NCBI GenBank assembly: GCA_001179505.1
Contig: CDMY01000297.1
Span: 62,001-126,000, forward strand
Reading direction: 5' to 3'
Origin: Vitrella brassicaformis CCMP3155
Taxonomy: Eukaryota; Protista; Chromerida
DNA: 64,000 nt
Position numbers and translations under genes: made by a program. Within the stretch, counting starts at the first letter, position 1. Every line of letters starts with the position of its first letter. Below the pieces are notes generated by a model, which was not told the origin of the DNA, made no database searches, and saw nothing but the letters and a program-made list of their open reading frames with translations. This document shows, one piece after another, positions 56,894 through 63,899 of this stretch.

Positions 56894-56990
56894 TACGTAT
56901 GCTGTGCGTTTCCACGCCATTGATTCATGCAGGCGATGACGCCCTTCTGCAACAACAGTGGAGGGACGGTCAACAGTTGTGTGTTGTCCG
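56894..56990 (+). pseudogene. Third, diverged copy of the peptide-gene last intron/exon junction
   Basis: gctgtgcgtttccacgccattgattcatgcag|gcgatgacgccctt (acceptor at 56932) matches ttcgccattgattcgtgcag|gcgatgacacccct (57511) and gctgtgcgttccctcgccgttccttcgtgcag|gcgacgacgcccct (63807), but it loses the RR site and the Cys pattern. Confidence 0.5.
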
Positions 56991-57361
56991 TGAGCTGCCC
57001 GCTGAGAGCGCTGTGCCTGAGTCATCATCTGCTAACGTGTTGCCGTCCGCTGCCCTCCCCCCTTCGCCCCCAGCAGGCGGCCGGCCACGACGCTGCCGAC
57101 AGCATCGGAGGACACAAAGACCACGGCAAGGAAGCAGAGGGATCGGGTGGCTCACGTGGGTGTGGTGACAATGGACGAGGCGTTATCGGTGGTGTGGTGG
57201 GCGGTGAGGAGGCCGGGCGGACAAGGGCTGCAGGGTGTCGGATGCGTCGAGTGGGTGTGGTGGGGATGGAGGAGGCATTGTCGGTGGCGTGGTGTGCACT
57301 GAGGGTCTGTCTGGCGGTGCGTTCGCAGACCCCGTCTGCTTGGAGAGGCTCCTTCGGTTAG

Positions 57362-57576
57362 GGTGACCGTAGCGTGTCCAGAGGGACTGCGCTGCTGGGT
57401 GGCAAGCAGACGCTCGACGACCACGATGGTGAGTCAACAAAGACACAACACCCACGCTTCCATCTGTGCAAATCATATAGCTGTGTCTTTCTTCGCCATT
57501 GATTCGTGCAGGCGATGACACCCCTCTGCGCCGCCTGAGCTGCTTTGCCAACTGCACTGGTACAGAGGGGAGATGA
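57362..57576 (+). CDS. Paralogous pro-peptide and mature-peptide exons of the Cys-peptide precursor family (first exon not resolved)
   Basis: Exon 57362-57428 GDRSVSRGTALLGGKQTLDDHD plus phase-1 intron plus exon 57512-57576 GDDTPLRRLSCFANCTGTEGR*. Homologous in sequence and intron phase to 63646-63899. Confidence 0.65.
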
Positions 57577-57863
57577 CTGATGCAGAAGCTCTCATTCATT
57601 CGTACAGCTGGCGACGCCTTCAGTCGCACAGGTGCTGAACACACTCACGTACACGCCCATGGATGAGGCGTGCATTTGATGTTGACTCTCTCTCTCTCTC
57701 TCTTCAGTCTGCGAGTGCATGTGTGCATGACTGAAGAGTGAGTACAGACAAAGATAGATAGATATGAGGCATCCGATGTCGTCATCGTATTGCAGACTCG
57801 GATGCGTTCATGAATGGCCTGTGACTGAAGTACTATTATGTCCAGTCAGCCATATCTCACTCG

Positions 57864-60800
57864 TCAAACAAACTGCACGTGCCACACTGCCTCATGAACA
57901 GGACAGAACACTGCAGGCAATGTGATCGAATCAGATAAATTTCTCAGTTCACAAATAACCAGGCCGGATTGTCGAGCGCCCTGTGAAAGCCGAGAAAGTG
58001 AGAGACAGGCACATACCTGTGCACATACAACATGGACACCAAGCATGCAAGACATACCTGGCAAGCCACTCCCCCGGCCCAGGGGAAGTACACAAGCCAG
58101 GCGGCCCCAAGGGGTCGCATGACACGACACCATCGAACGTCCCTGCCTGGTTTTCGCAGGGCTGCTAACCGTTTCCGTGTTCATGGAGACGCGATGAATG
58201 AATGAATTAAGTCACGGACATGTGTGTGAATGTGCGCGTGTTCATTGGCGCCAAATCGAAAACGCGTACGTTACCATGCACGATGGATGGCGAGTCATGT
58301 GACTTGAATTGCATGTGGACACTCACAACAAAACCATCGACGGACCCAACAACATGAAGCGATGCAATGCTGTCTATCAATTGACGCGATCTGTCTGCCA
58401 ATTGGATACAGCCTGCCCACGCGCCTCATAGTGGAGCAACAGCATGAACGGCGGGCAGGGACGATTGCCCTCTCATCAGCGTCAGCACGACGCTTCCGTC
58501 CCCTTACAGGCGCAAAAAGTCACGAAAGAATGCACGAATAGACAAATAGGCCGGCCGTCATTGCACGTCATACGTGCAAGCGTCACACCGACAACGGACG
58601 AAGAGACCTGGAAATGAAGCAGGCAGGCAGAAATGACCACACACAGAATAACACTGGAGCTGGCAGCCGATCTCTTCTGACCTGCAGCACACGGGACGCG
58701 CGGCTGAATGTAGAAATGCCGACAAGTTGAGTGCCGCGATCGGAGGCCCGCAAACAATGCCGAGCTCACGGACGATGTCCGTCGGTTGCCCCATGAATGT
58801 TTGGCTGCAAAGAGCGGCTAACCACGGAAGGGATAGGCCTCTTCTGCACGAAAACACAATCAGAACACACAGACAGCAACAAGCCATTGGTGTCCTTGCA
58901 TCCTCTGTCTTCCGTCCTGCGTACCGCAAATTACGAGCACGGGGCAGTCTTGAAACAGACGAATACGATTTTCCACGCCGTCTCGAGTGAAATTGACACT
59001 GATAGTTAACGGAACACTTCGAACAACGAAGCCGCCGCGCCCTTGGGTCTCGTTTCTAAGGCGCTCGATCTGGTCAGGGAAGCAGTCTAGGGCTCCCTCC
59101 TTGAATTCGCCGGAGACCTGGAGGGGGGAAACCTCTGTCACATTGAAGCTTTCCTTCAGTTCGCTTTCGGTGGGCGCAATGCGGGCGATAGTACTGAAGG
59201 GCAAAGAGACCAAACAGCAAGACAGTGACGAACAGGAATGCCAACGGAGTGCTGCTTGGTTGATTTGCATGTCACCTGAGGTCGATGCCGTCGATCGTTG
59301 TCAGGGCCATGATGTTTTGGGTCTCGCCGTCAGGTGGTGGTGGGGGGGTGGCGGACAGATCGACGGTATCAACGACGATGGGCTCATGGGAAAGGCACTG
59401 AATCTGAACTGGCGGGGCTGGGAGAAAGAGACGAGACAGACACGCGTATATCAAAAGTCAGACCCCGTAGATGTCTCCGGTTCAACTCACATTGTTCAGT
59501 CCCGATGCCGCACACCTCTCTCAAGGGCCCCGTTATTACAGATACCCATTGCGATAAGTCCTGTCCCTCACTGAACCAGGACATTCTGAAGAAGCTCCAG
59601 AGATCTGTCACGTTGTCATTATCTGAGTCCCGGACCTGAACATCAAATGCATCAGAGGACGGACATGAGCATGAAAGCTGGTCTTTGTTGGTATGTCTAC
59701 CTATGCCCACCTGCAGCGCAGGGACGGAGAATACGGTTTGTTGACGGCTCGAATTCGTCTTCGGATCATACTCACTTGAGTTGAAAGTCCCATTGGTCTC
59801 GTGCGTGAACGTTTGGGTCACATTCAGGTAACACTCGTCGCTGGCATTGAGAACCGTGTACTGCATCTCTCCAATCGGCGCGCTTGAGGTGATCAGCACC
59901 TCCGGAAAAAGGACTCTTTTGCGACTTACACCAGGCCCCACACTCTCAATCACGGGGGCAAACGTCGTGGTCTTCTCTTTTCCTCGGCTGAGGGCCTGGT
60001 TTTCTGCTGGGTCGAAGGAGACGCCACCGACAAGTGTGCCTGCACATACAGCAAGCACACACGTATCAGGAGGGGAATCCATGACAGGCTGTTTTCTCCG
60101 TCCCTGGCTTATGTATGCACCCACCTTCGACGAACATCAGTGTGCCTTGGCAGTCTTCAGGCCACACCTGCTCCACCGTCCCTTTGATCTCCACATTTGC
60201 AAAGCCCACCTGCGGCTGATCGTTGCCCGAATAATTGACTGCTGCTATTCGACGATCCAGGCTCCCCACATCATAGCGAATCCTCACTTGGACATCAGCC
60301 CACTCTCCCTCGCAGCTGAAATAATACGTCGACTCGTCTGTGGGCGCGAATTTATCAGTAGGAGAAGTGTTAGTCTCTCGGTCGACTATTAGTTGGAGAC
60401 ACCATTGGTCGACAGGTGGTGGGTCGATGCCGTCTTCGAGAGCTGAGCTGTTGTACTTGAAATCCGTCATGCGGTATGTCGACGGCTGGGCTGTAGGCGG
60501 GGCAGACAGATTAGCAGCGGGGCATGCCTCAACTGAGACACAAACGACAGGAATGTACACAGCAGACAGGCGAGCTCTCTCTGCTTTCTCTTGCAGCTTA
60601 CAGCACTCAAATCCCATCATGCATTCTTCTTCCCAAATGACTTTGAACCCCTCTTCATCCTCATCAAATGCCGCTATCGTGTCATTGCACCGCATATCCG
60701 TGTCTTTTTTATTCACAAATTTTACGCTTGCCACGATGTTGTGGTCGCCTTCCTTGGCTTTTCCGTCATGTCGACATGAGAAGTTACTCAGTTGCTCTAT

Positions 60801-63241
60801 TTGTACGGCAACGCACGTATCCTCTCCGAGAACCCCCCCATTGGGCGCAAGAGCGACGGCCGTGATCTCGCCGACGAACTCCGGGTGCAGAAGCTCCTTA
60901 AGGAATTCCACGCGGCCAACCTGGTCAAAGCCGGAGGGGAATGTCTGCAGTCTTGGTCCTCGACAATTGGCCAACACTCAGAGACAGACAGACAGACAGA
61001 CAGACAGATGGAAGAGGAAAATATGTCGCATGTTAGTGCTTTTGCTCCATCTACCTTCTCTATCATCGATCAAAGGGCCTGAGAAAACGACAGACAACCA
61101 GATTGATCAAACGGCCTGACAGATCTCCTGATACTGAAGGGTACCTACCGAGCGAACCCTTCAGTATCAAGTCAAGCGACGTGCCCGTCTCCGTGTTCAA
61201 GAGCTCAAAAGACCGAAACGGCGCACTGGGATCAGTGCCGAAGGTACAAAGGACCGACACAGCAAGAGAGATGTTCTCAAACATGGGATCTGACACATTG
61301 CAATTGGATAAAGTGTCATTGAGTAGCTCCGGCGTAGCAAGCAAAAAGTCCCCGGTCAACACGCTGGCGAAGGACAGGTCTGGCGACTTGTCTCCTGGCT
61401 GAAAGACGGGAAAGTGAATCGTTGGAAGGGCCTCGCCGAGGAGCGCTTCTTGGAGGTCTTGACCTAGACGGAATCCCGACTCAAGCTCGCTCGACGCTAC
61501 GTTAGCAGGCGGGCGCTCTTCCCGATACTTGTTCGCAAGCTCGATGCAGATCTCACTGCACTCCCGAAACGCCTTTCGATTGTCTATGGCAAACTCGCTG
61601 GCCTCCAACGGGTTCTGAGACAGACACACAGACACCCACACATGTGCTTGTACCCTCGGCTGGTGCACGTACCCTCCGAGTGGTTTCGCTCATCGGGCCT
61701 CTCGCGTAGCCTGACGTGGCCATCGCGAGCCTGCCGCCTGCGTTCGTCCCCCCCGACGTCACGGTGAAGACACGCTCGTTGAGCAGAGCATCGCATTCAT
61801 CAGGCACGTCATCGGGGAACGTCATAACGCCGAGGCTGGTGTGGGCGGCAGGTGATAGTATGGCCACGGTCCTTGCAATGACGAGGTCGTCCTGCTCCTC
61901 GTTGCCGACGATGAGAATCCGCTGCGGCTCCTGGTAGTCAAATTGCTGGGCGATGAGAGACTCCGACTCGTCCACATAGCCCGTCAAAGTGACCTCGATC
62001 TGCGCCTCAATGCCCTCGCACGCCGGATTGCTGGACTTCTCCACAACCATGACTCCTTGGATCGTTGCAACGGCCGGTATTAGTACGTTGCCGGTGCGAT
62101 TAGAACACAGCCCGGTCTCGGGGCAGTCGAATTGGAGGGTCACGCTGACGCCCTCTGTCGTGTCGCACGAGAGGTCCAAGAAGAAGTCATCGAGCCCACT
62201 ATCATCATTCTTCTTGCCCTGGATCCTCATGCAGCTCGACACACCGGTGCCCACGTTCTTGATGGTATCGAGGTAGGCATTCGAGTGCACGTCTTCAAAC
62301 AGATAAGTGCCGGGCACCAGCTGGGCGAACGTCGACTCTTGCGGCACTGGAAACCGCTCGTTCGGCAGCCAACTCTGGTTTCTTGGGTCGGGCCCCATGT
62401 CTTCCCTTCTCTCGACGACAGGCAGGCTGTCCGCACAGTCGAAGGGCACAGCGAAGCGGTTGACGGCATTGAAGCACGGATCCAGCTCCGCCGGGAAACA
62501 CAGCGACGATGGCTTGCCGCTGACGACACCCTTGGTGAGCCTGACATCGCCTTGTGCCACCTCGGCCGCCTCACCGAACAGACCTCTGGTGTCTTCGATG
62601 CAGTAGCAGAAGCGCGAGTCGCTGGTCCGCGCACAAATAGGCTTGTTAGACGGGCAGCTGACAGACAGGCAGACAGACAGCATACCGACGTTGCCATCAC
62701 GACCAATCACGTGTGTGTACCTTCCGAGAGCTGCCGTTCCCAGGTCAGTGATGTTTGTGCGATTGACGCCGCTAGGCTCCCCGCACAAAATGGACTGATT
62801 CTCGCCCGACGCAGTCACGTCACCCGCCGTATCTGAGCTCCTGCTATTATTCAAGCCGTCATTGAGGGCGATTTCCTGTTGGATTTGTAGATAGACTTCG
62901 ACGTTCTCATTGTACAGGCACTGCCCGAAGTTGCCCCGCTCGGGGTGGTCGACGATGGGCAGCAGAGCATTGGGCTCGCATCTCGAAAGGGGCTCAGTTT
63001 GAAGGAATTCTGGCAACGAGTTGACGGCTGAAAACAAACCGGGAAGTCAACGGAAGAAGCGTGGCCTCACAACGTGTGTCCTCGAGTGCTCACGTGGCAG
63101 GCAGTTCTTGTTGGCTACAGCCACAGGTCCGAAGGTATTTCCCGAGAGGCAGGCAGTCGTGAACTGACCCACAGCACCTCTCCTCTCCCAGTGGGTAAGC
63201 ACGATGAGGAACAGGCACACGAGAAGCCACCCTGCCAGCAT
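57864..63241 (-). CDS. Large secreted/surface, acidic, Cys-rich protein of unknown function
   Basis: Signal MLAGWLLVCLFLIVLTHWERRGAVG. Splices in frame NKNCLP|PVNSLPEF into long exons (ORFs 61553-63037, 61063-61668, 60066-60977, 59384-60124, 58860-59270) with many N-x-S/T sequons. The 3' end is uncertain. Confidence 0.65.
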
Positions 63242-63513
63242 ACGATTCGCTCATTCATCTGGCCTCCTGTCTTGAAGCAAACACAAACCAATCTTAGCAA
63301 TCTGTTCTTGTCTGTCTCCTGATCCTTGCGTGTACCTGTGTTCTTCAATCTCATCGTCCATCGGGCCCGAAAAATTTACATCTGTACGGGAAGAGTTGCG
63401 AGCGTAAGTAAGGCCGCCGCCACCTCTGGCTTCACTGGATGATCGTCGGTTTGCGTTAGCGCCTGGCTGTACTCTGTGTGTGTGGATATTGCCGAGTGAA
63501 ACTGAGGCCGAAG

Positions 63514-63899
63514 ATGAGATTCCTGTGGTGTGCCTGCTTCTTTGTGGCTGTCGTGTTGACGAGTGCTGCACTCGGACAGGTGAGGGAGGGACGCAATCAC
63601 ACGTGCGGCACAGGCGTGAGCTGTGTGTTGTGCACATTGGCTCAGGAGGTGTCTGGCGGGACTGCGCTGCGGGGGGGAGTGAGTGGCCAGCAGACAAACG
63701 ACGTCCACCAAGGTCAGCCACACGCGCACGACGACGCACGAGCACTCTTCCGTCCATCTGTTCACACGATGCCATGCTGTGCGTTCCCTCGCCGTTCCTT
63801 CGTGCAGGCGACGACGCCCCTCTGCGCCGCCTTGTCTGCTGCAGCCAATGCACCACCTCCAGCTGCTTTGCCAACTGTACAGCCGGCTGCATCCAGTGA
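63514..63899 (+). CDS. 74-aa secreted prepro-peptide (conotoxin-like architecture; mature LVCCSQCTTSSCFANCTAGCIQ)
   Basis: Exons 63514-63579 (MRFLWCACFFVAVVLTSAALGQ), 63646-63712 (EVSGGTALRGGVSGQQTNDVHQ) and 63808-63899 (GDDAPLRR-LVCCSQCTTSSCFANCTAGCIQ*). GT-AG junctions; the phase-1 donor position is conserved in the 57.4-kb paralogue. Confidence 0.75.

Follow-up and report, generated by a model that had tools for sequence, protein, structure and literature searches.

The window analyzed here is a stretch of 64,000 nucleotides from the genome of Vitrella brassicaformis CCMP3155, a free-living alga and sister of the apicomplexan parasites. Close to the downstream end of the window, three plus-strand segments (63514-63579, 63646-63712, and 63808-63899) join into a 225-nt open reading frame with a 74-aa product, letter for letter as an earlier, sequence-only reading of the window had proposed. 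Exon 1 encodes a putative signal peptide (M1-G21, positions 63514-63576) and Q22. Exon 2 encodes a Gly/Ser/Gln-rich pro region (E23-Q44) and supplies the first base of the G45 codon, and exon 3 encodes a conserved spacer with a candidate cleavage site, D46-D47-A-P-L-R51-R52-L53 (63810-63833), followed by the core peptide V54-Q74 (63834-63896; a 22-mer if L53 is counted) and a TGA stop codon (63897-63899). The six cysteines of the core follow the framework CC-x2-C-x4-C-x3-C-x3-C. Both introns are of the GT..AG type with acceptors ending in CAG: intron 1 (63580-63645) is 66 nt long and starts with GTGAGG, and intron 2 (63713-63807) is 95 nt long, lies in phase 1, and starts with GTCAGC. An annotated uncharacterized protein identical to the 74-aa product (P0003; CEM00730.1/A0A0G4ES92) emerged from a profile search against 1.84 billion representative proteins. 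The gene model is correct but was already present in public annotation.

The N-terminus of P0003 has one basic residue (R2) followed by a hydrophobic core with a mean Kyte-Doolittle value of 2.5 over residues 3 to 16, with alanine at position -3 and glycine at -1 ahead of Q22. Given these parts, residues 1 to 21 are predicted heuristically to form a signal peptide, and exon 1 would therefore consist of essentially nothing but the signal.

Transcription and splicing were examined in contigs assembled from public runs, among them X1, X7, and X8, for which the window position equals the L001 coordinate plus 61899. Contigs from four public runs cross the locus free of introns and are therefore cDNA. 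An X7 contig matches the window without differences over 63413-63580, which places the 5′ untranslated region at 63413-63513 at minimum. The joint 63579/63646, and with it the GTGAGG donor of exon 1, was present in X1 and X7, and the joint 63712/63808 was present in X1, X7, and X8, as the sequence-only reading had predicted. That reading had also weighed a GTGAGT at 63679 as an alternative donor, which would shift exon 3 into a frame lacking the cysteines, and had preferred the cysteine frame; no joint starting at 63679 occurs in any of the contigs from the public runs. The sole alternative joint uses a NAGNAG acceptor (CAG|GAG) 3 nt downstream, at 63649, which accounts for about 1% of contig depth in run X7 and yields a minor form without Glu23. 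At 63676 and 63679, the X8 contig has the letters of the window itself and therefore derives from the window copy, while the X1 contig has C at both positions, along with the 5′ letters of a paralogue on scaffold C770, and therefore derives from that copy. Taken together with the X7 contig, these assignments establish that both copies are transcribed and spliced. Thus, a gene with a heuristically recognized signal peptide, a pro region, a basic site, and a six-cysteine core is expressed from the locus.

Two other kinds of contig were observed in the region. In one 1444-nt cDNA contig (L001:1907-3581, running from window position 63806 past the window end), exon 3 of the peptide gene and the region downstream of it are linked to the minus-strand exons of the next large gene, whose introns read CT..AC; according to these unstranded contigs, the 3′ regions of the two convergent transcripts therefore either overlap or adjoin each other. 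Other contigs, with many loose ends, jump between window position ∼62680 (L001:781) and 64109-64125 (L001:2210-2226) through GGCA/GACA-type simple repeats, a pattern suggestive of a dispersed microsatellite affecting the assembly rather than of a splice.

Family members and paired large genes

To find relatives, the V. brassicaformis CCMP3155 assembly was searched (72,700,666 bases on 1064 scaffolds, which are the published figures for this assembly [PMC4501334]). On scaffold C770, a DNA search identified a copy with 96% identity over the 5′ part of the window gene, flanking introns included. There, five minus-strand exons (83386-83321, 83253-83187, 83091-83052, 82981-82799, and 82731-82680) join into a 135-aa product identical to the annotated protein P0007, which has the same signal and pro exons as the window gene, followed by three spacer-plus-core units. 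The joints among exons 3, 4, and 5 were set by canonical GT..AG sites and by the identity with annotated P0007. About 6 kb away on C770, a four-exon minus-strand gene (77157-77095, 77032-76969, 76885-76843, and 76749-76659) encodes the 86-aa protein P0004 (CEM33028.1), which has a single core and ends in the vestige of a second spacer. A phase 2 intron follows the CCS codons in three of the five units and is missing from the other two. The family suspected in the sequence-only reading thus exists, with two intact paralogues and four further cores, and the three-core protein P0007 is stronger evidence than was available to that reading. Its expectation that such genes would be too small and fragmented for standard annotation did not hold, since all three intact members (P0003, P0007, and P0004) are annotated.

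The paralogue inside the window, which had been cited in favor of the gene model, proved to be a degenerate remnant on the plus strand (56899-57634). Its pieces are out of order, with an exon-3-like piece at 56899-56960, exon-2-like and exon-3-like pieces at 57374-57560, and an exon-1-like piece at 57607-57634. The core has lost about 27 nt and retains two cysteines, and there is no intact signal exon. An exon-3-like piece at 57512-57560 would encode a two-cysteine tail. As judged from these sequences, the remnant lends the window gene weak support, and the C770 genes lend it strong support. Searches with spacer, core, and pro-exon patterns and a DNA search with the P0004 gene found no loci in the genome beyond the three genes and these pieces. 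Near-matches to the spacer or core patterns on C322 and C1042 were judged on inspection to be nonmembers. The pure cysteine-codon pattern, which is swamped by CTG/TGC repeats, matched the genome 226 times, compared to 36 times for a reversed control. Among the matches listed, the single other nonrepeat instance of the exact framework lies at C294:51697-51750 on the minus strand; it has no signal, spacer, RR, or other basic site nearby and is probably due to chance.

Each intact peptide gene is arranged head-to-head with a large gene, with about 130 to 270 bp between the two start codons. The large gene next to the window peptide gene occupies 58400-63241 on the minus strand, as delineated from open reading frames, with its ATG at 63241 and an approximate 3′ limit; 272 bp separate the two ATGs. 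Its first intron (63028-63093) appears as a CT..AC joint in cDNA contigs, so this neighbor is transcribed as well. The other three of the four paralogous large genes extend from window position 64578 to the end of the contig (C297, which ends at window position 68918) and over C770:77291-82036 and C770:83592-84716. C297 and C770 carry colinear arrays, in the order large gene, peptide gene, large gene, peptide gene, and the sequences indicate that the large gene was co-duplicated with the peptide gene, on C770 and downstream on C297. The retained pairing suggests that the two genes are co-regulated. The large proteins are orphan proteins of a secreted type that contain cysteines and begin with a hydrophobic leader, and their relatives (P0001 and P0002) were found only in Vitrella. 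Pfam searches with five large exons of the 58400-63241 gene and with P0001 and P0002 gave no match; the UniRef name "Thyroglobulin type-1 domain" has no Pfam support.

Conservation of the core and its spacer

The cysteine framework and the spacer preceding it, D-D-x-x-[LV]-R-[RH]-L, are present in all five cores. Across the five aligned units, the invariant residues (P0003 numbering) are D46, D47, R51, L53, C55, C56, S57, C59, C64, A66, C68, and C72. Position 52 is arginine in four units and histidine in the intact protein P0004. The codon for Leu53 is CTT, CTG, CTA, or CTC, and the cysteine codons alternate between TGC and TGT. Between units, pS ranges from 0.44 to 0.77, pN from 0.14 to 0.27, and pN/pS from 0.18 to 0.43. 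Synonymous sites are near saturation at these values, and the low pN/pS therefore indicates that the framework and the site are under purifying selection. Translated in six frames, the window has 42 places with six cysteines within 22 residues, most of them in TG-rich repeats, and the exact framework occurs there once. That it recurs in the four other cores, those of the two paralogues, while the cysteine codons vary synonymously, is not explained by chance.

The sequence-only reading had likened the gene to conotoxins, in which a conserved prepro region precedes a diversifying toxin. The evolution of the family does not follow that pattern. In addition to the constraint on the cores, the first 44 codons of P0003 and P0007 differ with a pS of only 0.06, and the introns between them are likewise almost identical; because the near-identity of the 5′ parts extends into introns, it reflects recent conversion or duplication.

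The likeness to known peptides was put forward as an analogy rather than a homology, and the searches agree with this. No Pfam match at an E value of ≤10 and no NCBIfam match was obtained for the peptide family, a core-profile search of PDB sequences yielded no relative, and no relatives outside Vitrella were found among the 1.84 billion representative proteins, in the ESM Atlas, or in JGI metagenome contigs. The ESM Atlas gave no usable match for P0007 or for P0002, the relative of the neighboring large protein. The only further significant library matches were to P0005, an EGF-like repeat protein of a metazoan, and to P0006, which has 2958 aa and no matched stretch. The automatic UniRef names of P0007 ("4Fe-4S ferredoxin-type domain-containing protein") and P0004 ("SREBP regulating gene protein") have no family-model support and are probably pattern artifacts. 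The C-x3-C-x3-C segment recalls the alpha-hairpinins, in which two C-x3-C pairs staple a helix-loop-helix, and AlphaFold2 on the family alignment reached a pLDDT of 55, with only weak helices at residues 48 to 57 and 62 to 67; because confidence is low, no fold or disulfide pattern is proposed. Neutral peptides with a high content of Ser, Thr, and Cys, the cores are unlike classical cationic antimicrobial peptides. Provisionally, we regard the three genes as an orphan Vitrella family of secreted prepropeptides with one or three six-cysteine cores.

Candidate routes of maturation

With a signal and a pro region of low complexity ahead of one to three near-identical cores, each behind a conserved basic site, the family resembles the layout of cleaved multi-copy precursors, as it was defined for the fungal KEPs (PMC6339444). 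The three cores of P0007 each follow RR, and P0003 and P0004 carry a single core, the P0004 site being RH. We infer the secretion, disulfides, cleavage, and enzyme of the family as follows. The 21-residue signal peptide would bring the precursor into the ER, each core (one in P0003 and P0004, three in P0007) would fold with up to three disulfides, and endoproteolysis at the spacer would free each core. The enzyme would be an aspartyl protease of the plasmepsin V/ASP5 type (clade D) cutting after the invariant leucine, in which case P0003 would yield the neutral 21-mer V54-Q74, with a calculated mass of 2122.74 Da with three disulfides. The peptides would most likely act as extracellular ligands or defense peptides, possibly in concert with the large secreted protein whose gene is co-duplicated and divergently transcribed, but this role is a guess, as is any toxin-like or pheromone-like activity of the cores. 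This combination, an expressed prepropeptide family whose cores are released after leucine, is the explanation that we favor, tentatively.

Three considerations favor cleavage after leucine over cleavage after the arginine pair. The R-x-L element is invariant while the dibasic pair is variable; no kexin or furin P-domain was found despite plentiful S8 subtilases; and clade D aspartyl proteases of the sister parasites cut this same motif. Toxoplasma ASP5 (TgASP5) requires RRL and cuts after the leucine, leaving P1′ and P2′ free, and Plasmodium falciparum plasmepsin V (PfPMV) needs arginine at P3 and leucine at P1 and cleaves RRLAE with about double the efficiency seen for RTLAQ, its own KAHRP site (PMC4764566). 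P2′ after the leucine is Cys or Pro in the Vitrella sites, not the E/Q/D of the Plasmodium PEXEL, and the P2′ residue is dispensable for cleavage by both ASP5 and PMV (PMC4764566). The genome has about 15 pepsin-family loci, three of which were compared for the plasmepsin V match. One of these, an open reading frame with two D[TS]G motifs at C688:132567-133730 (minus strand), matches the plasmepsin V structures 4zl4 and 8tyf with an E value of 4e-39, the next best protease being saccharopepsin at 3e-7. It is one exon of the plasmepsin V-like gene and ends 16 residues past the second catalytic motif. A clade D enzyme is therefore plausibly present, and this reading frame is a candidate for it, its orthology being suggested by the best PDB matches. 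Several points weigh against leucine cleavage, the Cys or Pro at P2′ among them. The RHL site of P0004 would be rejected under strict TgASP5 specificity, and the internal cores of P0007 would keep an acidic tail of 9 to 12 residues unless a second trimming step exists.

The family could also be processed by a dibasic, subtilisin-like convertase cutting after R-R, which would release a 22-mer starting at L53 (calculated mass, 2235.82 Da), with carboxypeptidase trimming of the internal cores. The sequence-only reading had read the site as dibasic, and the route is the commonest in eukaryotes and fits the fungal KEPs (PMC6339444). In its favor, RR precedes four of the five intact cores, and the genome has at least 53 exon matches to Peptidase_S8. 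However, the kexin P-domain (PF01483) had no match in the genome, which was read exon by exon, so that a split domain could be missed, and the intact protein P0004 has R-H at the site. A purely dibasic site would, moreover, not need the following leucine, which is invariant despite its varying codon. Altogether, we consider dibasic processing somewhat unlikely.

Less likely still is a reading in which nothing is cleaved. The proteins would then be small, secreted, and modular, with a conserved acidic/basic linker joining one to three cysteine-rich mini-domains, and would serve, for example, in the wall, in adhesion, or as partners of the paired large protein. Small secreted proteins with repeated cysteine-rich modules are common, and the head-to-head pairing in all three intact copies suggests a joint role with the large secreted protein. 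Yet the linker is as conserved as the cysteine framework, its D, D, R, and L being invariant, a degree of constraint typical of recognition sites and unusual in passive linkers, and the single-core members retain a low-complexity pro region of about 30 residues before the site.

Highly improbable is a bipartite leader to the plastid or another organelle, with the N-terminus as its first half and cysteine modules that bind metal or an Fe-S cluster. The complex plastid of Vitrella is reached via the ER, the cores are 27% cysteine with CC and C-x2-C motifs, and the UniRef name of P0007 points the same way; against this, none of the ferredoxin or metallothionein families in Pfam or NCBIfam gave a match, the region past the signal has four acidic residues, repeated internal spacers cannot serve as transit peptides, and the core has a conserved aromatic residue (F or W). 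Equally improbable is a young, lineage-specific family that is transcribed without a selected peptide function: the orphan family is limited to two duplicated arrays with decayed copies alongside, but pN/pS is far below 1 at near-saturated synonymous divergence, all six cysteines are kept in five of five units, and the frame is intact across three to five exons in three genes.

Known precursors of similar layout and wider meaning

Close parallels to the family are known from several systems. Like the fungal KEX2-processed repeat proteins (PMC6339444, PMC7329392), the Vitrella precursors have a signal followed by one to several near-identical short cores at a conserved basic site, and like them they belong to small, lineage-specific families whose functions are mostly unassigned. 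They differ from KEPs in coming from an alveolate without a detected kexin P-domain, in having six-cysteine cores that are probably disulfide rich, and in a site, [LV]-R-[RH]-L, in which the leucine is invariant and the second basic residue is variable. Like the substrates of ASP5 and plasmepsin V (TEXEL, RRLxx; PEXEL, RxLxE/Q/D [PMC4764566]), they combine a secretory signal with an RRL, which in P0003 lies at residues 51 to 53, 30 residues past the predicted signal cleavage, and the alga encodes a plasmepsin V-like protease. A TEXEL can act far from the N-terminus (PMC4764566), as the internal sites of P0007 would need. Unlike those substrates, which are parasite effector or dense-granule proteins, the Vitrella members are short, tandem, cysteine-rich peptides with one RHL and with Cys or Pro at P2′.

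Other resemblances concern layout and cysteine pattern. Conopeptide precursors share the prepro organization and the short C-terminal cysteine-rich peptide, and the CC-C-C-C-C order of all five cores is that of conopeptide framework IV, a likeness of pattern alone. In contrast to conopeptides, the Vitrella peptides come from a nonvenomous alga, with up to several cores per precursor and cores under purifying rather than diversifying selection, and they show no sequence relation to conopeptides in Pfam, in the PDB, or among the 1.84 billion representative proteins. The Ib-AMP polyprotein of Impatiens balsamina is a similar multi-peptide precursor, containing several disulfide-bonded peptides of about 20 residues with acidic propeptide spacers between them; Ib-AMPs are strongly basic and have four cysteines, whereas the Vitrella cores are neutral and have six, and no homology is apparent. 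The pheromones of Euplotes, another alveolate, are likewise small, secreted, disulfide-rich products of prepro-proteins and are not cationic. They have at least 38 residues and single-copy precursors, and the library search found no sequence similarity between them and the Vitrella family.

The wider question at stake is what the PEXEL/TEXEL-cleaving protease did before apicomplexan parasitism. One possible answer, which we hold more cautiously than our explanation of the peptide family itself, is that the plasmepsin V/ASP5-type protease of Vitrella is a general propeptide convertase that cuts R-R-L in secreted precursors, with the six-cysteine family as one class of substrate. We found no literature linking RRL or TEXEL sites to secreted proteins of chromerids. 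If the answer is right, the export-processing step of malaria and Toxoplasma parasites would descend from an ancestral peptide-maturation pathway, and the family would also represent a new disulfide-rich peptide scaffold. Independently of that answer, the family is a six-cysteine peptide scaffold from a coral-reef alga that had not been described before. If none of this holds, it would be an ordinary orphan family of small secreted cysteine-rich proteins. The sequences further suggest that multi-copy precursors of secreted peptides, little studied so far in alveolate algae, are produced by chromerids. Because Vitrella has both a candidate enzyme gene and candidate substrates that are short, abundant, and easily synthesized and carry an invariant R-x-L, the protease question can be tested.
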